Assembly: GCA_020891255.1 (NCBI GenBank)
Contig: BQFW01000005.1
Location: 1,550,001 to 1,614,000, forward strand
Source of the DNA: Entomortierella parvispora E1425
Lineage: Eukaryota; Fungi; Mortierellomycota
Direction: 5' to 3'
Length of the DNA: 64,000 bases
Shown here: one piece after another, positions 6,288-58,175 of the stretch
Layout of the letters: the number at the start of each line of letters is the position of its first letter
How positions within the stretch are numbered: the first letter of the stretch is position 1
Notes under the pieces: model-generated
The model's database searches: none
What the model saw: only the letters and a program-made list of their open reading frames with translations
What the model was told of the DNA's origin: nothing
Translations under genes and position numbers: made by a program

Positions 6288-7848
6288 CTAGATTAAGTCG
6301 GTGACATTCATGGGCATCTCATCGATCTGCGTGCTGTAGTATTGTTCAATATCGCGCAAGATCTTGATGTCGTCTTGTGTGACAAAGTTGATGGCAACAC
6401 CTTTGCGACCGAAACGTCCAGAACGACCAATGCTAGAAAAAAAAAAGGAAAAAAGAGAGAGTTAGGACTTACTATTCGCTAGCATAAATCGGCAATCACT
6501 TTCTCAAAAACGTACCGATGGATGTAGTTCTCACGATTGCTTGGAAGATCATAGTTGACGACCAAAGAGACCTGCTGAACATCAATACCGCGGGCCCAAA
6601 CATCTGTAGTAATCAGTACTCGACTATGATAAGAGAGTAATGTACACACACTTGTCAGGGTCATTTCTTATAGACATCCAAAGGTCAAAAATACGATGGG
6701 ATGAGATAGGTCACTTACCTAGATCCTTGTCTAAACTCCTGCATAATTGCATCACGTTCCTTTTGAGGCATCTCTCCATGCATAGACGATACTGTGAAAT
6801 TGGCCTCCCTCATCTTGGTTGTCAACCAGTCCACCTTTCTGCGGGTATTGCAGAAGATGACAGCCTGTGTGATTGTCAACGTGTCGTAGAGATCGCAAAG
6901 GGTGTCAAACTTCCAGTCCTCTTTCTCAACAGCAACAAAGAACTGCTTGATTCCCTCCAACGTCAATTCATCACGTTTGACCAAGATACGAATAGGGTCC
7001 GTCATGAACTTGGAAGTCATTTCCAGCACATCATGAGGGAGAGTAGCGGACAAAATAACAACTTGAGTCGAAGGTGGCAAAAAGCGGTAGACATCGTAAA
7101 TCTGATCCTTGAATCCCTGGTTCAAAAGTTCATCAGCCTCATCCAGCACCATCATCTTGATATGGCGTGTCCTGAGGTTGCGGCGACGGATCATATCAAA
7201 GACACGACCAGGTGTTCCAACAACCACATGTTGACCGTGATCCAGCTGGCGAATATCTTCTCCGACGCTTGTTCCTCCAATACAGGCGTGACACTGGACG
7301 TTCATGTAGTCTCCCAAAGCCAGAATAACACTCTGGATTTGAATGGCCAATTCGCGGGTGGGAGCCAGAACCAAGGCTTGTGTCTCACGGATGGAAGTGT
7401 CGATCGATTGCAAAATTGAGATCGAGAATGTGGCGGTCTTTCCTGTTCCAGACTGAGCCTGTGCAATGACATCGCGTCCCTTGACAATGGGGTTAATGGC
7501 ACGCTGTTGGATGGCTGAAGGTCTCTCGAAGTCTACATAGAGCAAGTAGAGGGGTCAATATCCCATATATTCAAACAAGCATCAACGAAAAAAAAATTAA
7601 TGTTTGCTACGACTTACTGTACGCATACACGCCACGAAGTAAGTCGTCCTTCAAGCCGAGAGAGTCAAAAGTTGGCACAACTAGAGGCATAGATTTAGAT
7701 CGGTATCAAGAAACAAAAGGGGGGTCAACAGCTGCTCTATCGTAGATCTGCTACACATGACGATAGATTAGGTAATGACTCTACCCTTGACATCCTCGCT
7801 GGTCTCAAAGACGAGTTTCTCGTCTTGCTTGATGTTGATGCCGGCCAT
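6288..7848 (-). CDS. FAL1: DEAD-box RNA helicase eIF4A-III (exon junction complex core; Fal1)
   Basis: [46 protein letters not shown]. The segments [49 protein letters not shown] and C-terminal [12 protein letters not shown] match eIF4A-III rather than eIF4A1. Confidence 0.96.
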
Positions 7849-8381
7849 TGTTTGATTCCTGATGTCGAGGGTTGACTGGATGGATGGAATGTCAACTGTC
7901 CAATGTTCTCCTTTCTTTCAAATATCGTAACACATGCGCCAAGCAATGTTCCGGTGACGCTCGATCACATGACTTGTATAAGTCGGGGATTCCTATAGAG
8001 GCGCGTGCGTGCGTGCGCTGCAGCAGCCACAAGCGTGGAAATGGCACCCTGCACGCCTTTGTCGCACGGCCTGTTCAGCCTGTCCTTGACACCTGTTCAC
8101 TCTGCTCTGCCTGCATCCTGCCTACCTGTCTCTTTGTCTGCATCTCACGCTTCCTTTCTGCGCCTTGCCTGAATTGGTCCCATCCCCACCTTACGCAACA
8201 CCGCCACGCGGCTCTCTGAGTAGGCAATTCCATCTGTCCTTTTCTCCGCTTTGCCTACTTGGACGACTTTGCCAATTCCACCTTCGCCTCTTTCCTTCGT
8301 CACACCCATAAACCATTATTTTTATCCTCTGTCATATTTCAACCCTATCCCTTGACATTATTCTCCCTTTCTCGCTGACCT

Positions 8382-11300
8382 ATGCCGCCTTACACTGTCA
8401 CGACTTCAATGGACATGGATATCCCAAAGGCAGAGTGGGGAGACCTCTCCACTGAACTCCACAACATCCTTCCTTATGGCGATAGCCTTGCTCAAGAAGC
8501 CAGTAACATGTTGAGCAACATTGTGCACCATTTTGGGCTTTGCCTAAAGTCTGAGGACTGGGCCCCCGGAGCGATCTACTGGGCCAAACAACTAAGCGAG
8601 TATGAGTGTTGCTGATTTTGGCTACTTAGGCAGTGTCGTATATCTGGTGTAGAGAATGAAAGTTGGATTGGATCTGATCGATTCCGCTCCTCAAACGTAG
8701 ATATCTCGATCTAAAGTACACTCTCCCGAAGGAAACTCGTATCGCCTTTGCAAAGGTGTTTTGGGAGCTAACGATGGCTCCCGGTATGGACGCCACGATG
8801 GTGGAAGTCTGGGCACACTATTGCCGCCGATTGCTCAAGTAAGGATAGACAAGAGATGAACGTGGGTGCTTTGTGCGGACCTGCTTTCTACCTCCGTGAT
8901 ATTGAGTCCGAGAGTGACTGTCGGGCAGGCTGTCAGGTTTGATTTTGGTGGCAACATACTCACGTGTCCTTCTACGTTCGATTCATAGAAAAAAGGATCT
9001 GCTAGAAAGAGACGACTTGACCCTACCCTGGCGGCCCGCCTATGACCTCCTAGACAGGATTTTGTTTCCCAAGAACAGGCAAAGAGCACTACTATCGGAA
9101 TCGTATGGATGATTTGCTTTTTGTTGTCACAAAAAAAAACACTCTCTAAACCTTCTGCCACCTTCAATTTTGTTTCTACTTTCTATGACTGTTACCCTCT
9201 TTGCGTTGTCTCGCTCATCGCCCCATTTAATTTGATCCGCACGTCTATTCTTGATTTCACAATCATAGTAAGCGAATGGCCAAGGTCGTCCGCTTGATTG
9301 AGACCGCTCAAAGGTTCGGACTTCTCTGCCTGTGTAGCATTGATTTCTTGCAGGGCCACCACAGCTAACAAATAGACCACTTCTCTAGGTTCTTCTCACA
9401 AGAATCTGCGGACGAAATTCTGGAAGAATTTCTCCCAAAAATGACCACCAGTAATTTGCCTGAACTGCTGAAGGCGCAAACGTATCTTTGCACATTTTTG
9501 CCAACCGACATCGAGACAGGGAAGGATCCACGAGAGTGGATGCCTACTATTTTTAGAATTTGGTCCATGGCTGTGCGGTCGAGTGAGGTTGACCGCAATT
9601 TTCTATCGCTGATCGGTCGTGTTGCAGAGGACAACGTTGGCGTCAAGGACATGTTTACACAAGACCAGGTTCGCACAGTCTTCACTGCCGGTTTGTCTTC
9701 TCTAAACCTTCCAGTCGGCAAAGGGCAACGAACAAACGCAGTGGATTCTGAAGGAGGAACGTCACACAAGGCGGTTGGTAGAAACGATGTAAGTGGCATT
9801 TCTGCCGAGTAAGTCAGTTCACAAGAACGTCAGGGGTCATACTGCCGCAACTCATATGTTTATATCTGTCCATAGATGCGAATGACGTCCTTTGTGATGT
9901 TCATTGTGAACACAATCAATCCTGTCACAGAGAATGCTGCACCAAAGACCTCCACGCTGGCCCATTTACGAGATTTGATCCAGGCGATCGAGTCTTTCTT
10001 TCATCCCTCAAACTCTGGACCTTGGTCGCACGCGCTGGCCTTGTTCCTGCAGTCATTTGCATATGACTTCTTACAGAGGATGAAGCGAGGTAAGAGCATT
10101 CTTGGGCCGTCTTTAGTTGTGCACTGTCATGCTAGTGTCACTGACATTTCTGGATAATATAGAACAGGAAGTTGACTGCACCACACCCATGGAGCTTCGT
10201 CTTACACCAGAAATCAATGACAAGTTTGTGGACATAATCAAAGGCGTTGCATTCCTGTCAATGTTTTCAAAGGATCAAAGGGCTGTGGCACAAACACACA
10301 TGGCATTGCGATACTTGGCATGGATTTCTCCAAAGTTGATCCTCCCTGGTGTACTAGAGAGAGCCTATCCTTCCTTGGAATCTCTTACAGAGACTCATCG
10401 CACCACAAGCGTCATATCTGCACTTGGATCTCTGGCCGTGCCTCTACTGAATCCTCAACACTACCCGCAAGGCGGCAAACATCTCGCCCCTTTGTTGCAT
10501 CTGACAGTGCCGGGGGTGGATTTAAATGATCCAGTCAAGACTTGGTACACACTCATGTTCGTGTCGTCAATGATAGCTACAGTGCCTGTACGGGATTTGA
10601 CCACGACCGGTAGTGCTGGATTTCAATGGGGAGGAATGGACGAAGACATCATGGACTCGGACACTATGGTGGACATTGAAATGGAAGACGCTAATAGGAA
10701 GGCATCCACAGCCGACTTTGAGGAATGGGTCTTCAAGTTCCTTAGAAGGGCTATTGTCATGGTAAGTCGATTGTCTATATTCAGTACCAACGGGGCACTC
10801 GACATTGAACTAATGTTGACTCCTTGCTACCTTGCAGTTTGAAAATTATCCTGATGTGGGACAAGGCACCAAGAACACTGTTGAGAGTTCTGTCACGGGC
10901 ACTGTTTCGGTAAGAATGATAGCAAGCTTCGATGTTATTTGATGTCCCAGTTTCTAACATGAACATTTAGTATTGCTTCGAGGTTCTTTTCAGTCAATTG
11001 TCCAGGCAGCTGTACGACCGTACCACGAAACTTGTTATTGAGCTTGTGGAGTCCACGCCGTTGATCAATGCTTCCAAGGCCATGTCTGCTTTTGTGTCCT
11101 GCTGGGCAAGTGCAGATCGTGAGCACGCTATGGCCAAATTGTTTCCTATTCTGGACCGCCAGATTCGCGCAGAGCTCGAGCATGGCGCAAGCTCTGTACC
11201 CTCTTTGGCCTATTCTAATTTGCAACGCGACAGTTCCTTACATTACTACCAAGAGCTGCTAAACCAGCTGGTTCTTCGTTGCAACATTGTGGGCCATCGC

Positions 11301-14300
11301 GCGGAAATCTCTAGCCTGTTCAAGCTGATGCTTGATAAGTGTCAGGACCGCAGGGGATACAAGCTGGCTGCTAAGCTGATGCTTTCGTCTCTGCAGTCTC
11401 TGCTCTTTACCCATGTCCTTGATATCCGCTCACATGATACCAGTCAATGGGAAGATCAAGGTACGTGACAAAGGTACATCTGTGTTTGTATACTTCATAA
11501 GAACAGCCCACATTGACATATTCTACTTCCTTTAGAATTTATGTCCGAATCGCACAAGCACTGGGGTGCACTTGGAGAACCCGGGTGTGATGATCTGAAG
11601 TGGCACATTCCTTCGAACGAAGAAATCGACTTTGCCATTGAACTGATTGAAACCTTTCACGTTTCTTCCATGGAGCGTGCGCGAGAGCTTATGACATCGA
11701 CAGTGCTCGAGGGCAAGCAGTTATCTATCGAATTCTGTAAATCCATTACCACCATCAAGTCGTTCGTCACTGGTATGGTGACACTGGTCGACGATGACGG
11801 TGATAGCCCGATTTCCAGTGCAAGGTACACACACTCGCTGACAATTGTGATACGGTATCGCTTCTTTGACGCTTTAGCATTGTCTAACTTTAATCGTTTT
11901 ATTAGTCTTGGTGAAGACACAGCTTCCATTCAGCCTTTGAATCGCATCAACGTTGGGTACTGCCTCACAGACCGCAGTGATCCCAGAACCCAAAGGATCC
12001 GTGAGATTCGTGCTGCGACAGGCAACCTTCTCCATGACCTCATGGCGTATTTCCACACTAAGCGAGAAGACGACGTGGAGAACATCAAAGTCTTGGTGAA
12101 GGTATGTATCACGCATAGCTCTGGAAGTGGCGTTTCCTTGTTTTCTGACAATTCCTTTATATCCTTTATAGACTGCACGCGTGTTCCTCTCCAATCATGG
12201 TGTTGATGGAACTGTGTTTGATAACAACAAGAGAGGATACGAATTCCTGAAGCGAGCAATCACACTCCCTGGAAAGAAGAAGGAGTACCCCAGGCTGCTG
12301 CGGTGCAGACGAGCCGCCTTCCAGCACTTTTTGCGATGCAAAGTGAACTCATTCGGTCGCGCAAAGACTGAGCTGCATGACGCGCTGATCATGGATCTTG
12401 TTGACCTGTCCTTGAGTCAATACACGGACGTGAGAAAGTACGTCGTTTGCCATAGGTTACAGGTTCTTGACATTTTCCCATGTTCTTTTATTCTAACAGA
12501 TATATTTATTTGTATGTTTAGGAAGTCGCAACAAGCCCTTCTCCGAGCTATTCGGTGCTACCAGGGTGCCAAGAACCTGGTACTCCCTACATTGCTTAAG
12601 GCACTGGAGAGTTCAAGTAATGTCATGAGACGATAGTGCCTGTATTTTTTTGAATTCTGTTGACCGTATTAACATAATCTTTTTCATCATCAGACAAGGA
12701 TTATGAGCGGATGAAAGGTGCGCTATTCCTACTTAGTGCGAAAACCTTGGCTCTCCCTTGCCTCAGAGATTGGAGGTATGCACCAGAGTATGTCCTTCGA
12801 CTCTGCACAGCCCACCATGCCGACAAGGTACGTATTTATTTCTTGTTTGGTCAAAGTGAGACAAAAAATGAAGGACCCTAGCTAATACTCCATGTCTATT
12901 GCCTATTAGCCGAGCGTACAAACATTGGTCCGAAAGTGCTTCCTGGAATACATCATGAACATGACAAATATGTCGTTCAAGGTTTTGATCAATAGCGACT
13001 TTGCCAGCTCAATTCAGAACTTCGAGGTCACTCATGGTCTCCGAATGGACCCGGACACTCTGATCAGAGCCACGTCAAAGGCGAAAGGACGACGACTCGA
13101 CAACGTCAAAGCTTATGACAACCTTGTAGACACCTTGACCAGCCTGGTCCAGAACGAAGCTTTACATTGGCGATATCAGACGATGGCCATGAGTTTCTTG
13201 GAGCTTTACATGAGGCCCGAGATCCCTGCGAGCTTGGAGCTGACGCAGTTTGAGACTAAGAGTCTGCTGTCCGAGATGCCAATGGTCCGCAAGATTGCTC
13301 TATCTAGTTTAAGCATCATGATGGTCAATATGAAGATCCGAACATTCGGTCAGGGTGACGCTTACAGTCTTATCATTCGAAAGGCGACAAATCCTTTAAA
13401 GCATGTCGTGACTCTCCCAGAGACTATTCCAGACGACTTCACCTGGGAATACTTGAAGGCATCGGTTGCAGAGATTAACTATGATCATCCAGAATTGGGG
13501 TAAAGTTCTTGTTCCACTAGGCCATTGACATTTTGTAGGGCTTTGTTGCTAACTGATTGCTACCCTTGCTTAATAGACTGCTCGATGACTCTATAGCGAC
13601 TGGTTGGCTGGTGTGGCCAAAGTCATTCAAGGCATACTTGCCAAGAACGGACTCCTTTGTGATGCCCGATATCGATCTTGACTCGAGACCTGCTTACGAC
13701 CACCTAGAAAAATTCTTTGGAGAGTCATCCTTCTGGGAAAAGCAAATAGAGTTCATGGCTCAAGAACCTGTTCGAGGAGAACGCCATGATGCATTCAACA
13801 GCGAGCATGCTAGGTTTTTCAAGTCGATTTTCGGTCTGTGGGAGGACAAGTTCCTTGGAGTTGTCTCTCCAGCGATTACAGCTCTTTGTGCTAAATCCGA
13901 GGACAAGAACGCTCAAAGGACAGCTTCGGAGTTGATTGGAGGACTGATTCGAGGTAGTAAGCACTGGAAGAAGGGATCCCTGGACAGCATGTGGTCATGG
14001 CTGACACCTCTGTTGAAGAAGACATTCCAGCAATGCACTCCAGACTCGCTGGTCTATTGGGAGCGATTTGTAAAGTATTGCTGTCTCTTCCGTGATCCAC
14101 GACGTGTCTTGCCTCTGATCACTTTGATCTTCAACACGCCACTGGACAGGGATTCGACTGCTGCCTTCTCGGAATCTAAGAACCTGTTCTTCACGCGTGC
14201 AGTGCTTGTAAGCCTGTCATGGAGGGTGTCATTGCTGACACCTGTTCTACGAGAAGAGTGCCTGCGCCATATCACTCATCCTTACAAGCAGGTTCGCGAG

Positions 14301-22324: not shown

Positions 22325-25300
22325 TTAGTTGGAATCCTTATCAGACAATACGGCAGCAAATGAAAAGGGCTCGAAAGCATAACCGGTTCCTTGATAGAAC
22401 TTGTTGTTGAACTCAACCCAGTGCAAACGCAGTGCATGCAGAAAAGCTGAAAGACCCTCCATTCCGATCAAAATTCCGATAGTGAGGGTGAACCAGAGAG
22501 AGAACATGAAAATGGTCATAATCGCGCCAATAGCTCCGCCGAACTTCCAGGCCATGCCCAATGTCATAGACCACAGCACCTCAGACAACTGAGCGTGGGC
22601 TAGCGACAAAGCCCAAAGACGCAAATATGAGGCAGTGTTGGAAATACAACCGAGGCAGAAATCGATCGTGTGGATAACCTGATGAATCAGTTCTTCCGAG
22701 AACTCAAACTCTTCGCCATGCTCTCCTTCATGCTCCTCGGCTACAACGGCGCCTCCAGCTTCATCCGATTGATTGCTGTCGGTACTGATGCGAACGTGGT
22801 GTTCTGAAGGAAGATGGTATCCCATTGAGCGAGCCTTGTTGTGTTCCCACTTGAGATAGTATGGCTTCAAAAACAGCATCCAGGGAATACAGATAAATGC
22901 CAAAAGAACCAACAATCCTTGTACAAAGCCCTGTATAAAAAACATTTAAAGGTTAACGATAACACCCAACGATGAAAATAAAAAAAGAAAAATCAGTAGC
23001 TCATTTACCTGTCCTGGGTAGAGCTTATCGCCCTCATTAACCTTGCCAGGGCTCAAAAACATGTAGATCATGGTGTTAAGCAAACTTGGAGGAGAGTTAC
23101 GGATTGAATGACCGGCGGCATCAGTCTCATTCCAGTCCACAGTCCACTTGTAGGTGATCATCATAATAAGATAACCAAACAAACACTGCATAAATAGCAT
23201 CTGGGGAATGAATCCACCAATGATATCAATGGGTTTGCGGAAGAACTTTGCGTTGTAGTAGACCATACAGATTCCGAATGACATATGGATAACTCCGAGG
23301 ATGACCGACATCTTCATCTTGTAAGAGTTGGTGAAAAGTAAGTAGTTTTCGGTTCCGTGCCATGCGTAATCAATACCAAAAGGATAGGTGTGCCCATTGG
23401 GTTGAGCGATAACCGCGTCTCCGGTCTTGTAGCCTTCAGGGAGAGTGAATACCCATCCAGTCTGGAAGAATGGCAGGACACGGGAGAAAATATCGTTGTA
23501 CATCATTCCAGTGAAGATCGAGAAGGCACCCATAAGAAGGATGATGTAGCGACCTCCGTACACCATACCAAACATCTAGACAATTAAATAGCAAAAAAAA
23601 AAAAAAAAAGGTCAGTATTCACAAAAAAAAATATGGCCGACAGCTACTGTCCACCAATAAGTCTTACCTCTCCATCAACACTGGCAAGCTTGCGTTCATT
23701 CAGCACAAGCCAAACTCCGGCTAGAAAGACCAAGAAACCATGGCCAACATCTCCGAACATGACGGCGAACAGGAAGGGGAAGGAGATCACAGTGAACAGA
23801 CCGGGGTTCACCTCACGGTAGCGAGCCATACCATAGGCGTCCACAATGGCCTGGAACCCAGCAGTGAACTTGTTGGTCTTGTGGTACGTTGGAGGCTCTT
23901 TGTGAGTGCGAAGCTCATTCAAGATGGAAGGCACCATCGATCCAGAGCGTTCGGTCACGCCGCGAAGAGCAGTCTGGATGGTGTTGATTTCGTTGGTTGG
24001 GCACCAACCCTCGGCAATCAGACACTTGCGATTGATATCGTAGTTGAACTGATTCATGGTGTGGTAAGTTGCCTTTTCCTTCTTGACAATTGTCATCCAT
24101 GCAGTCAAATTTTCGGAGATGCGCATCAACTCCTGTCGACGGGTTTGGGTAGTGTTGACAAGCACAGAGTTGAATTCCTCAATGTGTCGGAGGACATCCA
24201 GAAGTGCCTCACGGCGACGATCAGAGGATGAGTCAATCGGGTACAAAGTCGCTCCCAAAGACTCGGCGATCTTCTTGATCTTTGCAAGAATCTCCTTACC
24301 GTGGGCAAAGATGATGAACACATTCTTCTCCACAACTGCATCAGTAGAGGGGTCGACAATAGGCTCCTCAATTTCAGCTGTGTTCATGTACAAGTTTCCA
24401 CGGAGCGAGCGCCAAAGGATTCGCTCGAATGTCTGCATCTTGTGGCGAGGGATCACACCAGTGACATTGCCAAGGGTGAGGCCTGCATTCTGAGCCTCCT
24501 GGGAAGGGCCAGTCTCCAAATCATCCAGAAGAGGGACGCTTGGCTCGTCGAAAGATTGACGGATATCATCTTGGTGAGAAGCGGCCTGTCGTAGAGAGGA
24601 TACAGGCTCGACGTTAGTAAAAAATGAAAATGCGCCTCTTGAGCTTTACTTGAAAATTACGAGGGATTCAAAGTGGAAGAATCATACCTCCTGGAAGAAG
24701 TCAGCGGTCTCACGCAAGACATGCTTGAGCTCAATGAGCTCCAAGGACCGGCGCTCCATATTCTCGCGCGAGTTGTTCATTTGCTGCAAACGATTCTCGT
24801 GCTCGGAAAGGCGTTCCTCAAGGTCGTCCAACTCCTGGCGTGAGCGGGCGCGGGACAGGTAGTTTGTGGGGATTGATGCGCGGATGGGGATCTCTGCCTT
24901 CTCAATTTGGGAGGTGAAGAAGCCTACGGAGGAAAGGGGGTCGACGGTAAGTATTTCTGTGTAGCGTGCACCCCCAAAGTCAACGTGACACCTCAGATGG
25001 ACGAGGGCTAAGACGACACTGCTGACAGAGTCAAGGATGGGAGGGTCAACACTTACGCAGCTGGCGCTCCATCTCATCAAAGCGTCTGATTTCACCGACA
25101 AAGGCGCGCTGGAAGGCATTCACATCGGGGTTAAGCTAGTAGCAGAACATCAACGATAGGGCGTTGGGCATTGTCGCGTTAGTCATCTGAGCACTTCGAT
25201 TTCCTAGCATTTTCGCTCTCTCTCATTCTTACATCGCGAAACTGTACGAGACCAAGCTCACCAAGCTCTGAGACGGTGGGCTGGGCTACTTCGGCAGGGA

Positions 25301-25355
25301 TATACAGCTGGATCAGCGACATTTCCTCCGAACGGAAGAACGTGGACTCTGACAT
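22325..25355 (-). CDS. VPH1: V-type proton ATPase V0 subunit a (Vph1-like)
   Basis: Starts MSESTFFRSEEMSLIQLYIP...[38 protein letters not shown]. Contains YREVNPG, FPFLFAVMFGDVGHG, SYKMKMS, SNTASYLRLWALSLAHAQLS (essential Arg) and LRLHWVEFNNKFY. Confidence 0.97.
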
Positions 25356-26139
25356 TGTGGTGTTAATCCAGTGTTGTGAGTAAGAAATGGGATAGATACA
25401 AAAAGGTACAGGAATTAGCGCGTGGAATCCCTCTTTTCGCGATCAAGACGATGAAGGCGAAGGGGGTGGAGAGGGAAAGAGAGGGCTGTCGAGTCGTTAA
25501 GGGAGGGAAAGAGCTGCGACAAGAACAAGGGTAGGGACAGGAACAAGGGACAAATCAACTGGGTCATGGACCATGCGACGGCATGACATGCAGTGACTTA
25601 TTGTTAAACATGCGATTGTCGACTTTCCTTAACGTCACCGTATTTTTTGGATGCGTGGGTAAGAATTGCAATGTATTGCCAGGAGGTCGATCCAGGTCAA
25701 GACAAACTATTGTCGTTGCTCTGTCAACAACTAGAGAACGATTGTCAATCGCCAGCTCGCCGCATTCCTTCAGCTAGCAGCCGCGTATCTCACAAGTTTT
25801 GAGCAATTATCGCGGCAGGAGGGCTCAGATGATGTGACTAGTGCATAAGATGCGTCTATTTGATTGCGTGGCGATCGTTGATACCGATGCTATGACGATG
25901 AAATGCTGGGGGTCGCTATGTGCTTTCGTGTCGCGCTGATTAAGATATGGCTTGCGAGTGGCGGGGAAGCGGTATAATTTCCTAAACTGTGGTGGACTTG
26001 CGCGCGGAGACTCTTTAGTAGTTGAGCGGGGTCATGTCACTATCGTCTCATGGATAAAATAGCTTAGTATCAGAAGGATAGACAAAAAGTAAACTCGATC
26101 AAACAAGTTTCGATTGTTTGCATGTCTCCATAGCGTTTT

Positions 26140-26655
26140 TGTCAAGTTCTTGGTTAGGAATTTAACATACAGCCTTGTCCACATTCTCTGGTTAAAGAAT
26201 GTTACAAAGCGCCGGCCCTAGTGGAACAGCTTTTTCACTACTTGTGCAACGAGGCAGGAAAATGTTTTATTGTTGAGTTCGTGAGAATTCAACATACAGC
26301 CTCTGCACATGCGCGAGCATGTCAGAAACACCGGCCCTAGTGGGACAGCTTTTCATTTTCCCCCAGATGTCATTGCTGCGACAAAATGCAACCAAAACGA
26401 AACTTATCTCTTCTCTCGATGTTCATTCGGCGCAGTACCTTCCTCGTATTGCTGCCTTAGCCTCCATCCACAACCACAACACAAAGGTGAAGGGTTGCGC
26501 TAGAGACACCACCCAGAGTCGGGAAAGCTTTTCATCGATTTCGCAATTGAAGCAGAAAATGTTTTATTGTTGAGTTCGTGAGAATTCAACATACAGCCCC
26601 CGCACATGCGCGAGCATGTCGGAAACACCGGCCCTAGTGGGACAGCTTTTCATTT
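26140..26655 (+). repeat. Tandem array of ~95-nt double-hairpin units (3 clear copies, 1 possible diverged copy); candidate structured ncRNA or non-autonomous element
   Basis: Copies start at 26140, 26271 and 26568. Copies 2 and 3 differ at only 3 positions over the core, and stems are kept by compensatory changes. All three share the tail CCGGCCCTAGTGGRACAGCTTTT. Confidence 0.85.
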
Positions 26656-26840
26656 CCCCCTAATGTCAATCGCTGCGAAGAGGGTAGAAGGCCAACGGGG
26701 AAGAGGGCATACATTACCTTGGTGAAGAAGATCAGCAAAGGGAAATTTCACACCAACTCACTGTCTTCTTGTGAAGTTGTGACTGCATTTATTTCATATG
26801 TACATGTGGCATAAGTGCCAAGACAGCACCACGCTCATTC

Positions 26841-27631
26841 TTACTCCAAGGCAATGGATCCTTGAGTGCCATAGCGAGCAAAAAGTGCCACGCCAACAGC
26901 CAGCACGGCTGCCAACCCCCAAGAGACGTTGGTGAAGATAAAGGAAGGACCATAGTGATGATAAGCAAACATGGCCGAGTTCTGAGTGGTATGGGCGATC
27001 AAACCCATGGCGACGATTTGAAGACCAGCTATGGAAGAAGAAGGAGGGGCGATCAGTAGGCTGGGCTATGAACGTTGCAAGTCAGTCGATCCAAGAAAGA
27101 ACTTGTGATGAATTTCCTAGTGTCTTTACCGAAAATGCCAACGGGTCCAAGAACGTACTTCCAGCCGTTGGCGAGCCAGCGATCACCAGTATAGAGTACA
27201 GTTCCCAAAAGCGCAAAGACCCAAAGACCAACGATCGATGAGGCTACAGCCACTCCGGCAGCGACACGCCACTCCAGGCAGAGGTTCACCCAACGACCCG
27301 ATTTTTCGCCAAAAGAGCTCTTGTCATGATCACAGTCACCCCAAGACTTTTGAGGGAATCGTCGGCAGTCGCCTGTGAGGGTCGAACACTTTTGAAAGAG
27401 TCCATAGTTGGCCTCCGTGTGGTAGGGCTCAGGGCCCTTGAACTGGACCCTTTCGGATATATAAAAAAAAAAAGAAGGTCAGCTGTAAGTTACAGTGGAG
27501 AGACATGGCAAGGATTAAACTTCACATCAACGCAGCTCCTACCACTTTGGCTCAAAGAGCGAGGCGAGCTGGAAGCCAAAAATGACCAAAAAGATGGCCG
27601 TAATGGCGATGTAGGCGTTACGGGTAGGCAT
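26841..27631 (-). CDS. Claudin/PMP22/Sur7-PalI-like four-pass membrane protein, 3 exons
   Basis: Spliced MPTRNAYIAITAIFLVIFGFQLASLFEPK-W-VQFKGPEPYHTEANY-GLFQKCSTLTGDC fits W-x15-GL[WF]-x2-C-x6-C. Four hydrophobic segments; stop TAA at 26841-26843. Confidence 0.75.
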
Positions 27632-28266
27632 GGTGAGAGAAGGGAGATTGAATGTCAATAGGATGTGGGAATGAAAGAATGAAAGAATGAATGACGAGAG
27701 AAAAAGTGAGCACAGAACAAAAGGGAGAGGTTGAAAAGAAAAGAAAAAAAAGAAGTCTGTTGAGAAGAGGGCCTAAAAAGCACCGTGCATGCATGAGAAC
27801 GGAAGAACCGCGCGGCTGCGAGTGGCGCACGGGATTGCGATCATGATGACGGGGTCCCAGCCTGCCCTGCACCTGGTGACGGATCAGTCGCGTGACAGGC
27901 TGTGTTTCCCCCAGCGCGCTGCGCCTGGAGTGCGCTTGGGCGTGTTTCGACCACCGTACTTTTTTTTCATTCTTTTCTTCTGTGCTTCTTCTGGTGGGCG
28001 TCGTAAGAGAACTCTTACGCGTGGAAGCTTGTCATCGAGGACGCGTCGTCCATAGCCATGCGCTCGGACGTGTTCATAGTCCATGGTCCTTCAGAATCGC
28101 TCAAAAACTAACAGCCGTTGTCTTCTTGGCAGAGAAGGTCAGCTTGGGTGGGCTGTTGCACTGCCTCTTGGCATCGCTTCATTTAAGGAAAAGTCTGCTC
28201 TTGTTTCTTTTGCTCCATTTGAACTTTTCTTTCCCTCTCCGCCATCCTTTATACCCACATTTCGTC

Positions 28267-29404
28267 ATGAAAGGCAATACACCATGGGCCGCTGTCGAAC
28301 AAGAGCCAGCACCCCCATCATACAACACCCTCCCTCAGGTCCAGACACCAGTTCAGTACGAAACACCAGTCCGAGCCAACTCTGTCTCTTCTGTCGGTCA
28401 AACGAGGCCAAGAACATTGGAGTCCAGTGCCAGTTCGGGATCGTTCACTGAAAGCAACTCATATCACCACCAGCAAGCCAGTAGCTTGGGCACCATCACA
28501 GACCAAACCATGGCCCTACCCGCACCAACGACTTCGGCCTCCTTCACCCATAAGAACGTCAGGATCAGTACTGTGGCCCTTGCAGGAAAAGACAAGATCC
28601 GACTCATCGGAACACCTGCATACCTAACACCTGAACTTCGCATCGCCATCCAGTCGAGCTGGGGCACAATCCAGCGTGAATCCAGTTATGGGGGTTCGCA
28701 TGAGTTCAAGCTGCAAGGCAACCCCTGGGGTGCTTCTCCAGGACCAGACCTGGTGCGATCTCAAAGACTAATTCTAGCAATCTTGGAGGCAATGGCCCGA
28801 TTGGGCTGGGATCTGGTCCTCTCCACAGATATTTCCCAGAGACAGCGCGACCAGGATACACTCTATTTTGAGCAAAATGCGACCTTTGCCAGCGACGATG
28901 CCAACAGTGGAGATGGCACGAAAGCCCCTTCAAGAACCGCCAACGTGGAAATGTTTGCGGTCTGCTTCCACAAATCGGACAAGATCAGAGTATTGGCAAT
29001 GGCTATCCCGCAAACTCAGAAGGTGACAGCTCTGGTGAAGCAGGCTGTTGCTTCGCAGTGGAAGTACAAGTATGACGATGCAAAGAGCCGATTTTTAGTG
29101 CGGTGGGCTATTTTTTTTCAGAATTGTGCACTGACCTTGATTTGGACGTTTTCTTTCGCTTTTGGTGTATAGAATCCAGCGGGAGCGCGACTACTGTGGT
29201 GTTTTCGAGCTCAAGCTTCAAGGAAACCCGTTCTGGTCTGGTGGCGAAGAGTTTGTGCAAGGCCGCATGGTCCTGGCGCAGATGCTAGCCAACTTCCGAG
29301 CGGAGGGATACCGTGTGTACGGGTCTGTTTGCATTGGACCCGGAAGCGAAGACGACCAGGTTGACTTCTGGATCTTCCGTCGAGCAGACCTGTTCTGGGG
29401 ATAG
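28267..29404 (+). CDS. Uncharacterised protein with an N-terminal PPxY motif and two tandem alpha/beta repeats
   Basis: APPSY in a disordered N-terminus. Repeat 1: DKIRLIG...W.TIQRE..YGG.HEFKLQGNPW...GW...STD. Repeat 2 (across an intron ending ~29172): DKIRVLA...WKYKIQRERDYCGVFELKLQGNPFW...GYRVYGSV. Confidence 0.8.
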
Positions 29405-29835: not shown

Positions 29836-32800
29836 ATGTTCTCATCTTTCAAGGACAAGCTCAATACGGGTTTGACCTCGATTCAGGAGAAGGGAGTCGC
29901 CGCCGCCAACGCCGCCGCCACAGCCGCTGCCGCTGCAGCCGAAGCTGCCAACAAAGCCGCCAACTCTGGATCCAATAGCCCTGCACAGCGACCCTCAAGC
30001 GACCATGCCTCAAGCTCGCACTATCCCGACCATCCGCTTCAGGACCCCTTGAATGTCTCATCGCCAGGTGGACCTGGCTCCCCCCAAAGGAGCAGCATTG
30101 GAGGCGGAGGATCCGCCACGTCGCTGTTCAGAAGGTCGCTGCAAACACCGCGAAAGTCGGCTGATCTGATCAGCTTTGGATCGTCCCCTCCGTCTACACC
30201 ACAGCAGTCATCCTCCTCCACAGGAACTGGAAATGCAGGCGTATCAAGAAAGTTGTTGACCATGGTGAGGCAACTGACCTTGGACCCCATGCAGGAGAAA
30301 CCAGATCCACTGCAGCTAGAACAGGTCAGGTCCACAGAGCCAGGCGGTGCAGAGATGACAGATACTCTAGTGGAAAAGCTGGAGAGACTGCAGCGTTATG
30401 AGGCCCGATTCCCAGGTATGATCTGAAGAACTCTTCCAGAACATCATTTTTTCTGGTTCATGAACAATACGCTGACGGCTTTGTGCTCTAGACCTCGCCA
30501 CGGCATTCAAGAGATTGATCAGGGAGAAACTCGCCATCGAGGCTGTCTTGAAAGCGTCGACGCCCATCGAGGACCTATCGGATGTGGAAGCGTTGGAGGC
30601 ACATCTGAAGAACATGTCGTACAAAAGCGAGGTAAAAGCCATAAAAAAAGATGAGCACTTGTGTTGCGCGAGGTCTAGTTGTACTCATTTTTTTTTTTTT
30701 TGCTCTTTCCATTAGGTGTCGATGCAAGAAATTAAACGTTTGAACGACGAACTTCGAGGTAAGGGCTTTTTTTACTTAGAGATGAATGTGCGTTGGGTCA
30801 TACAGATCGATCTGCTATTTACGATGTTTCTTGATTGATATCAAATAGATGCCACTAAGCTGAAGGAAGTGCATGTTCTGGAATCGTCATCGCAGTCTGA
30901 AATGATCGAGAATCTACAAGATCAGCTCGCTACAAAGACAAAGGTAAGGCGCAGTAGCAGGCCGCTGGTGGCAATCAAAATTGTTGAACGTTTTTCTAAT
31001 GTATGATAAATTCATCGCCGGTGTGTAGGAGATCGAGACTCTTCAAAAGGCGGAGCAAAAGCTCGACCAAAAGGATGAGGCTAGCGCAACAATAGCTAGA
31101 CAACAGGAGCGCATAGTGGAACTTGAAGGCCAGATCCAGAACTTGGAAATGCAGCTGTCCTCAACCTCGTCCACATCGTCCACAGTAGACCCCCTTTCAG
31201 CATCAGTTTCAGCCCCTGAGACAACCGCGGGCTCTTCTACGCAAGGCTCAGGATCTAGTTCTCCAACTCTCAAGGAGAAAAAGGTCTCTGCCAAGGAACA
31301 GAAAAAGAAAGATGTGGCGCTGCGGGAACTTATGACTCGATTGGAGGCTGTTATGAAGGAGAAGAAGCAAGCCCAGCAGGAGCAGGAGCAGGCCGAGGTC
31401 AAACTTTTGCAGCTTCAACTTGATCTGGACAAGGAGGTAAAGGTCAAGAAAGAGATGGTGGAGAAGTTGGACGAGCTTCAAAAGAAGGTGGGAGAAATGG
31501 AAGAGAAGGAGCATGTCCAACAGGGAGCCACCAAGAAGAACAACAAGAATAAGAAGTCTGCGGCCGCCACCAGCAAGGGTGCATCCGAAAGCTCTTCCAA
31601 GGACTCCGAGGCTGTTTCCACCTCTGACGACACCGCAACCGAATCGACTGACAATAACAATGCCAAGCTGGAGTTGGCATTGAAGGCCGCTACCTTGGAA
31701 GCCAGCGAAGCTCATGAAAGGCTGTCCAAATCACAGTCAGAGGCAGAGGCAGCCCAGCAGCGTGAGGCAGAGGCGAAGCAGGCTAGGGACGATGCTCTGC
31801 AGAGGGAGGCCGAGGCAATCAATAAGGAGTCGGAAGCCCTCCAGGCCAAATTGGATGCCGAGACATCCCTTAAAACGGCACAGGATTCCTTGTCAGCGCT
31901 TCAGACATCCAGTCAACACTCTGTCAAAGAAATTAAAATTGCAAAGGCGCAAATCAAGGAACTTCAAAAACTGGAGGGAGCACTCTTGGAAACCAAGGAA
32001 CATCTGTCAAAGGCACAAAAAGAGATCGAATCAACCCGCAAGGAGAGAGAGGAGGCCCAACTCCTGTTGAACGAACAGGTCGCAAAGTCCAAAGAAATTG
32101 AAGAGCGTCTGGAGAAGGAGGCAAAGGCTGCAGAGATTCTTCAGGTCAAGAGTCAGAAGCTTCTGGAGGAACGAGAGGAGGAGTTGAAGCGACTTCAGGA
32201 GGAAAAGCAGGTGTTGCAGCAAGAGATTGAATCTCTAAAGAACAGTCAGAACGATGCTAGCGATTCTGCTAAGAAGACGTCGCAAGAGCTCATTCAGTTG
32301 CAGGATGAACTTGCCGAAAAGGAAACCACTCTGTCAACATTGACTCAGGAACTCAAGGACTTGAAAGAGCAATTGAACACCAGCACCGACCTTTCTGAGC
32401 AAGTAGCTGCCCTTACGACACAGGTGACCGAGAAAGAGGCGCAAATTGAGGTTGATCGAGAGAAGATTGTAGCGGCCACAGCCGAGATGGAGCTTCTTCG
32501 TACCGCAACCAAAGAAGCTGAACAAAGAATCCAGGATCTCCAGCTTGCCAAGGACGAGCTTCAGAAGGAGCTGGAGGGCAAAATTTCAGAGGGGGCCACC
32601 CAGCTGGAAGCAAAGACACAGGAAGCAGACGACCTGCAAAGCGTGGTCGACGAGCTCAACCAGGAGAAGGACGAAATATTGTCGAAACTGGCTGTTGTAC
32701 AGGAGAAGGAGCAGATTCGAACGAACAAAATCCAGTCTCTTGAGGATGAATTATTGGCAGTTAGAAAAGAGCTAGAAATCGCATCTGCTTCTGCGGCTGT

Positions 32801-35800
32801 CGCGGCTACAGAGGCATCAAAGGCGTCTGCAAGCGAACCTGCAAATGCTGAAACTCCAAGCGGTGGCGCTGATGGAGCAGCTGACGTGGAGCAACTGAGA
32901 ACCAAGGTCAAAGAGCTCGAAGCTGAGATCGTGAGTCTGAACCATGTTCCATCTAAGAACGCGCAGAAGAAGCTTCGTCAAGAGTTGAACCAGACAAAGG
33001 CCGCAAAGCAAGCTGCGGAGGCCTTGGTAGTGACTTTGAAGGCGGAGCTCGAAAGTGCGCTCGCAACTCCATCCGCTGGTTCGGGTGCAAGTGCCGAGCG
33101 CGAGGAGGCCATCGAATCATCATCCTTCAAGAATGACGAAGCTGTGACAGAGTTGAAGACAAAGATATCAGAGCAAGAACAAGTCATTAAGGACAAGGAT
33201 GTCGCATTAGCCGAATTGAAATCGCAGCTGGACAAGGAAGTTGAGCGTCACCAATCAACCCAGGATCGCATTTTGCAGCTCGAGACCTCGGCCGCAGAGA
33301 AGGCGACGGATGTTGAGAAAGCAAAATCGGAACTTGAGGCCAAGCGCCGCGACAGCGAAGAGGCTGTCCAGAAGCTGGCCGAAGCTCGCGAAAAGGAGGC
33401 GACTTTGACTGCATCGTTGGAGAAAATCCAAAAGCAAGTGGTAGAAACTGCCGCCACGACTGAACATATGCGAGAGGCTCTGTTGAAGCAAGTAGAAAAT
33501 CTGGAAGAAGAGAAGAAGCAATTGGTCGAAAGCAAACAGAGATTCGAAAATGCCGAAAAGGAGGCCCAAAAGTCGACTCGGGAAAATCAAGAGAGCCTTG
33601 AGCAAGATCTGGTTATCTTGCGCAAAGAAAAGTCAGAGTTGGAGGCGCGAGTTGAGGAGCAAACAGAATTGCTTGCCAAGGAGCAATCTCAAGCCCAGAC
33701 TGCGATGGGCGAAACTGCATCTATTCTTGAGGCTGCACGCAAGAGGGAAGATGAGGCCATTGCTCGCGCTGAAGCATTGACGAAGGAGCGTGACGAGGTT
33801 TCCGAAAAGGTCCAGGGACTTGAAAAGCAGATCAAGATTTTGGAGTCATCCAAGAAAGGAGACGCGGAAACATTGGCCAGTCAAATCGAGACACTTCGTC
33901 AGGAGCAGGATGTACTTCAGAAGAAGTTGTCTGCAGCACAGTCTGAAATTAAGACTACTACAGAGTCCAAAGAAAAAGCATTGGCTGAATGGCAAGCACA
34001 GAAGACTACACTCTTGGAGGAAAGGGACCAGGCTCTTGGCAAGCTTACAACTGCAGAAGCCGCACTCAAACAAGCGGAGGAGAGCGAGGCCGATAAGACG
34101 CAGGCTACGGAGAAGCTGGACCTATTGACAAAGGAGTTGGATGACAAGACTGCAAAGCTGGAAGCCTTGGAACAGCAGCTGAAAACTATTCAGTCATCTA
34201 CCGCCGGCGAGACTAAAGCTTTGGAAGACCAGGTTCAAAATCTTACCAGCGAGAGAACTGCATTGGAGACTCAGGTCCAGGATGCCCGAGCACAGTACGA
34301 GGAATCCGCGAAACTTCTCAAAGTACTTGAGGATGATCTCCAACAACAAAAGTCCGCCAGAACCGAGGCTCAGGAGAAGGTTGCAGAATTGCAATCCAAG
34401 GTACAGTCGCTCACTATGAAGGACCGCGATACAAAGGAGGCCCTGGCTCTTGCCAAATCTACGATTCACCAGCGGGATGAGGACCTGGAGCTTTCCCGAA
34501 AGACCAAGGCTGAGGACGAGGACAAACTGCAAAAGTCAATGACCTTACTCAAGACAACTCGCAAGCAGATTCTGAGACTCGAGAAGGAGAAGCAGGAGGT
34601 GAGCGAGGAATTGGAGCAGTGCAAGGTCCAGATGGCCAAGGTCAACCAAGAAGCCAAGACGGCTAGTCAGCGCATGACTGCCCAGCAAGCAACAATGAGC
34701 AGCGATTTGGCCCGCCTTCAAGCAGTCCAAACCAAGATGGTACAGGACAAGGAGAAACTCATTCAGGAGAAGGAGCAGGTCTTTGACCAGTTGCAGATGA
34801 AGCAGGCTGAGTTTGAGTCATCGCAGACGTCGCTGGAGAATGTTGAGCACGAAATGCGCGAATACCGACATCAATTGGAGGAGGCTCGTGATCGAGTCAC
34901 CATGCTGGAGGAGGAGGCGACCCTTGCTAAGCGGTTGGCCGATTCCAAGGTGGCAGAGTCGGAAGGATTGAAGCGCAAGACTACAGAACTGGAGAAGAAG
35001 CTGGATCAAGTTCAGGCCATGATGAAGACAAGGAATGACTCGCACCGGGCTGTCCTCGAAAACCTGCAGCAGGAGATTGAGGAGACAAAGGAGACTCTGG
35101 GTCTGGAAGTTAGCCAGTTGAAGACCACGGTTGAAGAAAAGGAGAGCGCGATCAAGGTGCTGGAGCAGCAAGAAAGGGAGCGTACGTCAAAGCTGGATGA
35201 CCTGCAGACTGCCCACAGCACACACACTGCTGCCTTGCAGTCATTGCAGGAAGATGTTGAAGAGTTGAAGACTCAAAAGCGTAATTTGGAGCTCGAGCTG
35301 GTAAGACTGCATCCGTGGGGAAGTTGCCTTGTTTGGATTTTAATCAGAGTGCGGGTTTTAACATGCGTTATTGTCATATGGTTTTGTGATTCTAGCAACA
35401 CTTCAAGGAACTCGAGTCCATTTTGGCCAATGAGAAGGCTAACCACGAGAGATTTGTGGAGGACTCCAAGATGCGCGAGGGCCATCTCCGCACGTTGAAC
35501 AAGACGTTGAAGGAGGAAGTGCGAAAGCTTCACCAGAAGCATGGCGGTCCAGGATCACCTACACCTCAAACACCGGGCGGACCATTCACTCCAGGAGGCA
35601 ACTACCCCCAGACTCCAGGAGGACCAGGAGCAAATTCTGTACAGCAGACACCTTACCAGCATGCACACAACAACAGTCTCAGTGGTCGTGTCACCTCTCC
35701 AGGGTCGACACCGCCTGGAACGCCTCACTTTGGACGTATTCTGCAGCAACAACAACAGCAACAGTCTTCGCAAGATGACGACGTGAATGTGGAGTATTTG

Positions 35801-43256: not shown

Positions 43257-43432
43257 CCAATCCGCGCATGCGAGCCCCACGCGCGATTGGCTGCAGACCA
43301 CATAGGACTCGAAATGAAACGAGACTGGCGTGTGGACGGGCCAATCACGCGCTGGATTCAGCCACAGCCAGGGTCCCCTTGGGCTCATGCCCCGTCGTGG
43401 CGCCAATGAGCTGCAGATCACACCCCGCCAAT
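43257..43432. promoter_or_regulatory. Five CCAAT boxes in ~175 bp upstream of the ADAM gene
   Basis: CCAAT at 43257, 43341, 43403 and 43428, plus ATTGG at 43286. GC-rich context with CACGCG/GCGCATGCG. Confidence 0.5.
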
Positions 43433-43707
43433 GGCGGCTGCTTCGGGCACCGTGCGGGCGAGCCAGCAGTCAGTCGTCGCCAGAGGGGACATCCGTTCTC
43501 CCGGATGTTTTTCTTCTGTCTTCTACTTCTTCAAAGTGCAATGTTTCTCGGCCTTCTCTTTCCTCATTATTTCTGTCTTACTTGCACATTCACATCCACA
43601 CTCCTGCGCTTGCCCTTCTTTATTCTGTCATACCAACCCTCTACCCCTATACCCCCATTCCCCCCCGATTCCCTCAAGACGAGTTAATTTTTTTTTTCAC
43701 TGAAGTC

Positions 43708-46700
43708 ATGACTGTTCGTGCTAGCTTTTGTTTGCTGGCTGTTCTCGCCATGCTGTCTCTCTCGAGTACCACATCCGCCCACTCACCAGCATGGCCTTCA
43801 ATTGCATACTCAGAGACCATCCAATCTCTGCACCATGATATTCTCCCTCGCTCTCTGCTTTCCTCAAGCAGCAGCCACATCTCTGTGTTGAGCAAACGCA
43901 GTGAACGGGCTCCCTCAAAAGCGATAAACATCGTACAAAGGGGCGACCGTGTCCGACTCGAATTCTCGGCTTTCAATTCTACTTTTTTTCTCCATCTGGA
44001 GCCCAATAACGACTTGGTTCACCCAAACCTGGATCTCTCTGGTCATGAAGACCTGAGCTCTGTTCAAGATATCAAGGCGTTCAAAGGATTCGTCGTCCAA
44101 GACGAAGACACTTCCCTTCGCAAGTGGAACCGAGATCTTACCACATCTGCTGCAGAGGGGGCATCCCACACATACGAGCACAGGCTTTACGAGGAAGGCG
44201 TTCTAGGCTGGGCTCGTATGATGATTGAGCATGACGCCAACAGGTAAGTGAACCTCCCCCCTCCAAAAAAAAGTCTTCAATTGCCAATCTCTTTCTAATG
44301 AGTACTGACTAACCTTTCTCTTTTCTAGTGACAAAATGGTCTTGCGTGGTGCTTTCACCGACGGCTCAACCACCTATCATGTCACCTCTCGACAACACTA
44401 TCATGTTCAGAAGCGCTCAGACGATCACTCCCCTTCAAGTTCAGCCCCTGCAGACGGGGAGCTGGTCATCTACAGAGACTCGGATATTTTCAAGCACAAA
44501 CTCAAACAGGGCGATCACGATGAACCTCTCTCAACATGCGGCTCCACCGGGCCATCCTATGCATCTCCAGAACAACACCACGGGTACTATTACCCACCTG
44601 ATTTGACAGCACCTGTGCCGATGGGAGGTGCAGGGAGTGTCTTTGAGATGGGGATGCCCTTCCGGAAACGAGACGATGTCACGGTGAAAGTGGCTGGACC
44701 AAACCCAGTACCCACAGGATGCCCTGCCTCCAGGATGGTCAACTACATGGGTGTTGCAGCGGATTGCGTCTATGTCCGATCCTATGGCGGTCTTGAAAAT
44801 GCTCGCAAACAGATTTTGGCCGACTTCAACACCGCTTCTGCCATCTACGAGTCCACATTCAATGTGGCCTTGGGGCTCAATGCACTTCAGATCGAGTCCA
44901 TGAACTGCCCAACTATTCCCGTCCAAGATACTTTCTGGAATCAGGAGTGCACCAACAATTACACCATCACTGACCGTCTGAGTGACTTTTCCTACTGGCG
45001 CGGCCAGGATGGTAGGAGCACGGACGGAAACGGACTGTGGCATTTGGTGACTGGTTGCAATTCTGGATCCATTATCGGTATAGCATGGACACAAGCTCTG
45101 TGCCAGACCACTGCCATCGCCCAAGGATCACAATATACTGCCGGCGTCGCCGTGTCCTCGATCTCTCCAAATTCGTGGATGGTGGTCGCCCACGAAGTTG
45201 GACATGGTTTCGGAGCTAACCACGATTGCACAGCCAGCACTTGTGTTTCTGCGGCTGCCATTCAAGCGGCTGCCTGCTGCCCCCTGTCTGGGACCCAGTG
45301 TAATGCCGGTGACCATTATATCATGAACCCAGCCGAGCAGACTGCGACATCGATCTTCTCTCCCTGCAGTATTAATGCTATTTGTAGCAACATTGGTTCG
45401 CCTTCTGGATCTTGTTTGCAACCCGCTGGAGCCAAGGTTACCCAGTCTTTGAGCCTCAATGTCTGCGGTAACGGTATTAAGGAAGCGGGAGAGCAATGTG
45501 ATTGTGGCTCTCCAGACGAGTGCGCCAAGGACCCTTGCTGCGACGGCACAACCTGCACGTTTAAGGGCAATGCTGTCTGCGATGATCTCAACGATGATTG
45601 CTGCAACAACTGTCAGCTCGCCCCCGCAGGCATGGTTTGCCGATCTGCCATCTCGGACTGCGACATTGCCGAGACGTGCTCCGGCAACTCAACGACTTGT
45701 CCTCCAGATGTCCGTATCCCCAACTTGACAAGTTGCCAGATCCTTGCTGTTGGTGCCAACAACCGGACTGTGGTTCAGGGACAGGGTCAGTGCGCCAATG
45801 GCATTTGCACTTCTCGCGACTTGCAATGTGCCCAACAGGATCGACCAGGCATCACAGGGCAATGCACCGCTATGAAGTCAGGATGCGCGATGCTCTGTAA
45901 TGACCCCTCTGGTGCTGCCAACTCTTGTATGCAGATCCCAGGTGTCAACTTTGTTGATGGCTCACCTTGTGGCAACTCCAACGAGGGCATGTGTGTGAAC
46001 GGGGACTGCGTCCTTCCTGGAGGCTGGGCAAGAAACAATCTCCAGATCCTGATCCCAGTGATCTGTGCAATCGTGGTCATTTGTGGAGGTGGTGTCGGGC
46101 TAGGCATCTTTTGTCATCGTCGCATGGCCAAGAAGAGAGTGTTGTTGGGCAAGATCAAGGAGCAGTCTCTGGGTTTGCCCGAACCTTCGACTGGCAAGGA
46201 TGGCAAGGAGGGTGCAGATGTTCCTCGCTGGATGGTCACAGAAAACCGTCGCCAGTCGGCCACAGGCTTGTCGACTTCGGCCGCGACCCTAATGTCCAGA
46301 AGGCCGTCCTCTTCCCAAGCAATCTCCCGAAGGACCTCTCTCTCGGCCCAACATATCCTTGGACAAGAGGACGACGCAGGAACCAGCCAAGGCATCGATC
46401 TCTCCAACACGAGCGCGGCTCAGCAGCAGCTCTATTATCAGTACTGTCAGGCTCAGGCTCAAGCCCAAGGTCAGACAGCGGGAGAGACCCAAGAGCCGGT
46501 GCTCGTTCCACCTCAAAATGTTCATGCTTACCCATACACGTACATGACCCAACATCGGTTGGAGCACGAGCACAACTCGCCTTTCCTCTACCAGTTGGAA
46601 TCACCACCCTTGCCGGGATTACAATCACCTGCCCCGGCTTACTCTCCTTTCGGAGGTGAAGGACAAGCGGGCCGCTTCCCTGATGCTGAATACCACAGCG

Positions 46701-46741
46701 ACCAACAAAATCGCCCCGGACATCCCCAATCTCAACAATAA
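43708..46741 (+). CDS. ADAM-family (disintegrin and metalloprotease) type I membrane protease; 1 intron (~44244-44328)
   Basis: Signal peptide, prodomain with LSTCG cysteine-switch-like motif, zinc motif HEVGHGFGANHD, Met-turn YIMNP, disintegrin CGNGIKEAGEQCDCG...CRSAISDCDIAETC, Cys-rich domain, TM segment (ILIPVICAIVVICGGGVGLGIF) and cytoplasmic tail. Confidence 0.95.
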
Positions 46742-58100: not shown

Positions 58101-58143
58101 GGGTATGGGCATGAATATTCCTCAACAGCCTCAGCAGCAGCAA

Positions 58144-58175
<32 letters not shown>

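Follow-up and report, generated by a model that had tools for sequence, protein, structure and literature searches.

An array of hairpin-forming modules in the nuclear genome of Entomortierella parvispora strain E1425 keeps its stems paired through substitution and lies in a lineage-specific insertion between two genes. Compensated variation in the stems, free variation in the loops and an invariant linker and tail support the presence of a constrained fold. The array is read here, plausibly but tentatively, as a lineage-specific and probably mobile or captured repeat that would depend on its structure and act as a minus-strand RNA or as single-stranded DNA. The locus was analyzed within a window of 64,000 nucleotides (positions 1,550,001 to 1,614,000 of the 1.9-Mb nuclear contig BQFW01000005.1, forward strand), and the array occupies about positions 1,576,136-1,576,653 of that contig. 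All further coordinates are positions in the window. No gene is annotated over the array. The features referred to below are as follows.

22325-25355, minus strand: coding sequence of V-ATPase subunit a (gene model)
25650-26780 (about), no strand assigned: lineage-specific segment of ~1.13 kb that carries the array, borders uncertain by ~5 nt
25822-25868, no strand assigned: 47-nt island in the insertion, present on two different contigs of strain X3
26136-26238, minus strand: unit 1, the most diverged complete module, with plus-strand loops of 8 nt that contain TGGTTA
26267-26356, minus strand: unit 2, whose minus strand forms three hairpins: one in the tail, a bulged central one of 13 bp, and one of 10 bp that contains a single A.C mismatch
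26420-26538 (about), minus strand: unit X, tentatively a degenerate fourth module, in which stem sequences differ and the three-hairpin layout is kept on the minus strand
26564-26653, minus strand: unit 3, a close copy of unit 2 and part of a 124-nt repeat (94% identity)
26788-26793, minus strand: AAUAAA signal of the gene for a 198-aa membrane protein, read from the sequence, 48 nt past the stop codon
26841-27631, minus strand: coding sequence of the 198-aa membrane protein (gene model), stop codon at 26841-26843

Comparison with relatives shows the array-bearing segment to be a derived insertion, specific to the E. parvispora E1425 lineage. The segment is missing from an orthologous metagenome contig (L003; about 80% nucleotide identity), on which window positions 23055-25649 and 26830-29398 map to neighbouring positions. 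Contigs of three strains with the same species label (X4, X6 and X9) skip the segment, with only the expected flanking letters between, and in the outgroup Gryganskiella cystojenkinii (L012) gene order is kept, the two genes are ~435 bp apart and no unit is present, which brings the related genomes that lack the segment to five, outgroup genus included. In the closest strain, X3, the flanks differ by about 5-9% (gaps counted), 971 unalignable letters (<80% alike) stand in the segment's place, opposite window positions 25869-26776, and homology resumes at the same right border. No contig from the X3, X4, X6 or X9 assemblies aligned to 25939-26719 at 80% likeness, gaps of this kind being no proof of absence. 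The 47-nt island at 25822-25868 is found on two X3 contigs, both at single-copy depth, and at least that piece is therefore repeated in the X3 genome. On the minus strand the island reads as a small hairpin followed at once by CTAG and T.

The insertion lies ~300 nt ahead of the start codon of V-ATPase subunit a and starts 8-12 nt beyond the AAUAAA of the membrane-protein gene, so the cleavage site of the membrane-protein transcript may now fall in inserted DNA. Its GC content is 0.469, and its start reads TC on the minus strand. Neither terminal inverted repeats nor recognisable transposon ends were found in it, and its borders show no convincing target-site duplication, only a doubtful one of 7-8 nt. 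Solo LTR, hAT and MULE identities were rejected on these grounds together with the lack of TG..CA ends. Outside the array the inserted DNA does not fold with unusual stability (z -0.8 to +1.8). No transposon or Fanzor proteins were found in the window, the remainder of which consists of ordinary genes. One protein encoded nearby matches EMPS_03956 of Entomortierella parvispora at 100% identity. In Podila minutissima (L005, positions 7321-12187), the place upstream of V-ATPase subunit a is taken by SRP68, on the opposite strand, instead of the small membrane-protein gene; the Entomortierella/Gryganskiella gene order is therefore not common to all Mortierellaceae.

The location of the array in a lineage-specific insertion argues against a conserved host ncRNA gene, and for genome annotation it should not be entered as one. 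The divergence among the units bears on when they arose. Strains without the insertion differ from E1425 in the flanks by about 12-20%. Divergence among the units ranges from 25% to over 40%; unit 1 departs from unit 2 at 24% of stem positions and has replaced loops besides, and unit X differs far more. Duplication in place after insertion would be expected to leave units no more diverged than the flanks. Since they are more diverged, the array probably reached this site with its units already different, as a copy of a source elsewhere, and it would be at that source that selection acted on the fold.

Direct reading bore out every sequence detail of the tandem hairpin units given in the sequence-only reading, including their positions, loops, linker and tail. 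The three complete units each contain two plus-strand hairpins with common linker and tail motifs. Hairpin 1 is at 26271-26294 in unit 2 and 26568-26591 in unit 3, with a variant at 26140-26167 in unit 1. The plus-strand linker AACATACAGCC and the block CCGGCCCTAGTGGRACAGCTTTT are unchanged in units 1-3, as is the plus-strand tail CCGGCCCTAGTGGRACAGC, which is followed by T4-5 in each; the tail pattern has 3 matches in the window against 0 expected (100 shuffles). Units 2 and 3 are enclosed in a 124-nt direct repeat (26258-26381 and 26555-26678; 90-94% identity). In the alignment the units also share some 35 nt of leader ahead of hairpin 1; they are therefore modules of about 120-150 nt that follow one another head to tail without a break. 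Tandem Repeats Finder, for which the units are too diverged, left the array unreported.

Unit X occupies the interval from unit 2 to unit 3. The tail of unit X (26502-26535) has 79% identity to that of unit 2 (26324-26356), and positions 26446-26535 score 13.6 bits with the minus-strand covariance model; it is counted as a fourth module tentatively. Unit 1 scores 51.2 bits with the plus-strand model and 56.7 bits with the minus-strand model.

Retention of pairing was assessed on both strands. The plus-strand structure has 22 pairs; 97% of its cells are paired, and both partners have changed in 5 pairs. Its observed covariation score, computed on an alignment fitted to the covariance model, was reached by 0 of 500 shuffles. 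The minus-strand structure has 29 pairs in three abutting hairpins, and 100% of its 87 cells are paired, the structure being derived from the same 3-4 sequences' own folds and the alignment fitted to the model. Changes on one side number 5, all 5 via G-U, and 5 further pairs are changed on both sides. When partners in this structure were slid by 1-3 columns as a control, pairing fell to 37-46%. Fourteen stem bases differ between units 1 and 2, yet all 29 minus-strand pairs are intact; in a neutral simulation, 29 of 29 pairs were kept through 14 substitutions in <=1e-4 of trials at any transition bias.

Units 2 and 3 have three core differences, at alignment columns 36, 38 and 58. Columns 38 and 58 pair mutually, so that two of the three differences make up the exchange of T-A for C-G in hairpin 2 that had been described before. 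All three fall in minus-strand stems with pairing kept (p = 0.01-0.1); the third turns U-A into U-G when read on the minus strand and T-A into C.A when read on the plus strand. Conservation is higher in the single-stranded linker and tail than in the stems. Selection on structure, which had been proposed from the letters of the array, is supported by the retained pairing, the simulation and the shuffles.

The same proposal had placed the structure on the plus strand, possibly as a Pol III-type RNA, and this call is probably wrong. On the minus strand all units, unit X included, fold into three abutting hairpins, and it is only on this strand that the tail forms the third hairpin. G-U pairs number 4-6 per unit on the minus strand versus 1 on the plus strand, and hairpin 2 is lengthened by 3-4 pairs, G-U among them, on the minus strand only. 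Both tail substitutions specific to unit 1 keep minus-strand pairs, and one of them breaks a plus-strand pair. Transversion-type mismatches inside the minus-strand helices are limited to one conserved U.C, and at least 7 positions that pair on the minus strand are C.A on the plus strand. Unit 1 folds at -30.0 kcal/mol (z = -3.39) on the minus strand and at -21.8 kcal/mol (z = -0.84) on the plus strand, and unit X at -38.4 kcal/mol (minus, z only -1.1) versus -27.1 kcal/mol (plus). For units 2 and 3 the plus-strand folds reach z = -3.1 and z = -3.6, respectively. The GNRA loops GTGA and GCGA cap the hairpins of units 2 and 3 on the plus strand only. Four pairs down from the loop of hairpin 1, every one of the four units has a position that reads G-U on the plus strand and A.C on the minus; this plus-strand G-U is kept even in unit X, despite a wholly different lower stem. 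The strand signals are therefore in real conflict, the GNRA loops and the hairpin 1 G-U favouring the plus strand and the other G-U pairs the minus strand, and this conflict is unexplained. The minus strand is the more likely folding strand.

Known RNA families and further copies were searched for. A scan of the window at gathering thresholds against Rfam 15, whose families include snRNAs, snoRNAs, SRP RNA and ribozymes, returned zero matches. At E up to 10, over the region and over the array alone, nothing credible was returned and no match fell on units 1-3; the sole match inside the array was C/D-box sR47 on unit X, which scored a weak 13.8 bits where the cut-off is 40. The window contains no tRNA according to ARAGORN. 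Judged by eye, hairpin 1 contains a stretch resembling a B box that agrees at ~5 of the 9 specified positions and is lost in unit 1, and no conserved A or B box or upstream TATA was seen in the units. H/ACA snoRNAs have two ~60-nt hairpins with pseudouridylation pockets, an ANANNA hinge and an ACA 3 nt from the 3' end. An H/ACA identity was rejected, the hairpins here being 24-28 nt long without an internal pocket and no linker register fitting ANANNA; an ACAGCU before the T-run is the only ACA-box-like feature of the units. C/D, tRNA-SINE and ribozyme identities were rejected on inspection for absence of their features. The ARAGORN and Rfam results and the inspection agree with the previous judgement by eye that the units fit no tRNA, H/ACA or C/D RNA and no hammerhead or HDV core.

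Covariance models of both strands, run with filters off, found no further copy in the 64-kb window or in ~133 kb of other loci, related ones included. In JGI metagenomes, GTDB genomes and IMG/VR, the 18-base tail motif produced nothing beyond isolated chance matches that lacked hairpins, all at <=12.5 bits in the covariance models, an outcome that argues against an origin in a bacterial endosymbiont. An ORF read across a unit was used as a query for copies called as spurious genes and returned zero candidates, and an exact look-up of a second array ORF gave no record. RIP-like hypermutation was rejected, its indices being equal to the window background. A mitochondrial origin (NUMT) was also rejected, as the GC content is wrong and no rRNA, tRNA or mitochondrial match was found. 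A literature search for nuclear hairpin elements or Helitrons in Mortierellaceae found none. As regards mobility, the relatives show a presence/absence difference, and no second locus was found in the window, the ~133 kb or the motif scans.

Taken as a structure-dependent repeat, the module would fold as a single strand of minus polarity into a 7-bp tail hairpin, a 13-bp bulged central hairpin and a 10-bp hairpin with the conserved A.C. The hairpins would be joined by invariant unpaired minus-strand motifs, UGAAAAGCUGU on the 5' side and GGCUGUAUGU as the linker. Because the array appears to have diverged before arrival, the module would most likely be selfish, either a non-autonomous mobile element or a captured satellite-like piece, and its fold may be needed for its own propagation or handling. 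It would have arrived by transposition or capture and would then have multiplied on the spot through tandem duplication. The simplest acting form would be an RNA read in the direction of both flanking genes. This account is consistent with stem substitutions that keep minus-strand pairing, with the three-hairpin layout shared by unit X, with the derived state of the insertion (absent from L003, X4, X6, X9 and L012) and with the repetition of part of it in X3. Several observations count against it: no second locus was found in the window, in the ~133 kb of other loci or by motif scanning of the metagenome, bacterial and viral sets; terminal inverted repeats, a clear target-site duplication and recognisable ends are all lacking in the insertion; the GNRA loops of units 2 and 3 and the hairpin 1 G-U exist on the plus strand only; and the structure came from the same sequences, with the alignment fitted to it. 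A more specific version, in which the module would be the first example seen of an undescribed nuclear family of three-hairpin, minus-polarity RNAs in Mortierellaceae that mobile DNA carries and multiplies, is rather improbable. Such an RNA could be, for example, an orphan scaffold for an RNA-guided nuclease or an RNA handled by a retroelement.

Other explanations were weighed against the same evidence. The units could be a decaying local duplication under no functional selection, consisting of DNA palindromes whose covariation reflects a small sample and template-switch correction of quasi-palindromes. Template switching in quasi-palindromes is an established mutational mechanism, and this explanation suits an array of only four copies at a single locus in a single lineage, the degeneracy and weak fold of unit X (z -1.1), strand signals at odds between GNRA loops and G-U pairs, and a structure and alignment derived from the same sequences. 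It is nonetheless judged unlikely: it has to accommodate 29 of 29 pairs kept despite 14 stem changes (<=1e-4 of neutral simulations) and single-stranded linker and tail sequences more conserved than the stems, and palindrome correction does not predict non-Watson-Crick positions that are all of transition type and strongly strand-biased. Single-strandedness could alternatively reside in DNA, with the hairpins belonging to a minus-oriented rolling-circle (Helitron-type) or other HUH-type element and read by a transposase on the transferred strand. Helitrons insert at A^T, begin with 5' TC and end in a hairpin ~10-12 nt before CTRR. The sequence-only reading had raised Helitron or Helentron termini, and the resemblance holds insofar as units 1-3 read on the plus strand as a GC-rich hairpin, 11 nt, CTAG and T; strand-specific hairpins that tolerate G-T and an insertion without inverted repeats or a clear target duplication also agree with it. 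The resemblance fails in that homology runs 13 nt past CTAG in units 1-3 and unit X keeps its pairing with CTAG lost. Comparison of the empty site in L003 with the filled site shows neither an A^T junction nor a CTRR end at either border on either strand, the minus-strand TC start being the only part that fits. The dispersed copies with sharp CTAG ends that would mark such an element were not found in the window, the ~133 kb of other loci or the motif scans, and folds under DNA parameters are weak (-11 to -17 kcal/mol). A rolling-circle origin is accordingly considered a distinctly unlikely explanation.

Two further explanations give the array a role at its present site or as a gene. Small plus-strand RNA genes of ~90 nt, possibly Pol III-type, with two GNRA-capped hairpins and a T-run terminator, would account for the GNRA loops on both hairpins of units 2 and 3, for the G-U of hairpin 1 in all four units, for the T4-5 run after each unit and for the plus-strand z-scores of units 2 and 3 (-3.1 and -3.6). 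They would leave unit 1 poorly folded (z = -0.84), and the plus strand has C.A at no fewer than 7 positions paired on the minus strand. Fungal Pol III terminates poorly at T4, and the runs here are only T4-5; with no conserved A or B box or TATA by eye, no Rfam match and a locus missing in close relatives, genes of this type are very unlikely. An equally doubtful proposal, very improbable in our assessment, is that the array, which follows the poly(A) signal of the membrane-protein gene and precedes the V-ATPase promoter, is a co-opted cis-acting RNA or DNA element that serves 3'-end formation, read-through or insulation between the two tandem genes. The insertion 8-12 nt past the AAUAAA of the upstream gene, the orientation of the modules along both flanking genes and an AAUAAA on the minus strand directly after hairpin 1 in units 2 and 3 are in keeping with this proposal, whereas relatives manage without the insertion and unit divergence seems to predate it.

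Among known systems, the closest in form are the double-hairpin or repetitive hairpin-forming elements of Allomyces, zygomycete and sponge mitochondrial DNA (PMC2800124). As in the array, these are short non-coding units of consecutive hairpins, arranged in tandem and inserted between genes, that vary between close relatives and carry complementary stem substitutions. The likeness that had been drawn to them is sustained as an analogy and not as an identity: the array is nuclear, between nuclear genes, with a GC content of 47% versus 24% for the E1425 mitochondrial genome (PMC8759367). Unlike the mitochondrial elements, its units have three hairpins and long invariant single-stranded motifs, and it is known from one locus so far. 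The tandem ~130-nt monomers, the fold that outlasts sequence and the quick turnover between strains recall structured satellites and the 3' stem-loop modules of SINEs and LINEs. The array differs from these in having four units only and no poly(A) or simple-repeat tail, target duplication or Pol III boxes. Fanzor omega-RNAs derive from the 3' end of a Fanzor gene or from a transposon end and continue into a variable guide. Several abutting hairpins, conserved single-stranded joints, restriction to one strand and association with mobile DNA are shared with Fanzor and TnpB omega-RNA scaffolds; in contrast to these, no Fanzor or transposon protein is present in the window, and the spacers between units are mutually homologous and not variable guides.

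If the fold is truly selected, the array would be a nuclear counterpart of hairpin-forming mobile repeats that have until now been mainly organellar. Because the insertion is young and the corresponding sites are empty in sister strains, how it arose and spread can be tested directly. Much in its interpretation depends on the strand call, since the plus strand would give a two-hairpin GNRA RNA and the minus strand a three-hairpin, G-U-rich RNA, and only the minus strand fits all four units.

The hexamer TGGTTA occurs in both loops of unit 1 (26140-26200), and both loops of units 2 and 3 are GNRA, as had been noted from the sequence. The two loops of one unit thus change in parallel, which is accounted for by none of the explanations above; a common ligand for both loops is one possible cause. 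Elsewhere in the window, three long plus-strand ORFs at 31116-35498, 53043-55172 and 55189-58608 (1460, 709 and 1139 aa, respectively) have no Pfam match at E 1e-5. An ADAM-like gene at 43330-46741 (plus strand) combines a reprolysin propeptide with M12B metalloprotease and disintegrin domains.
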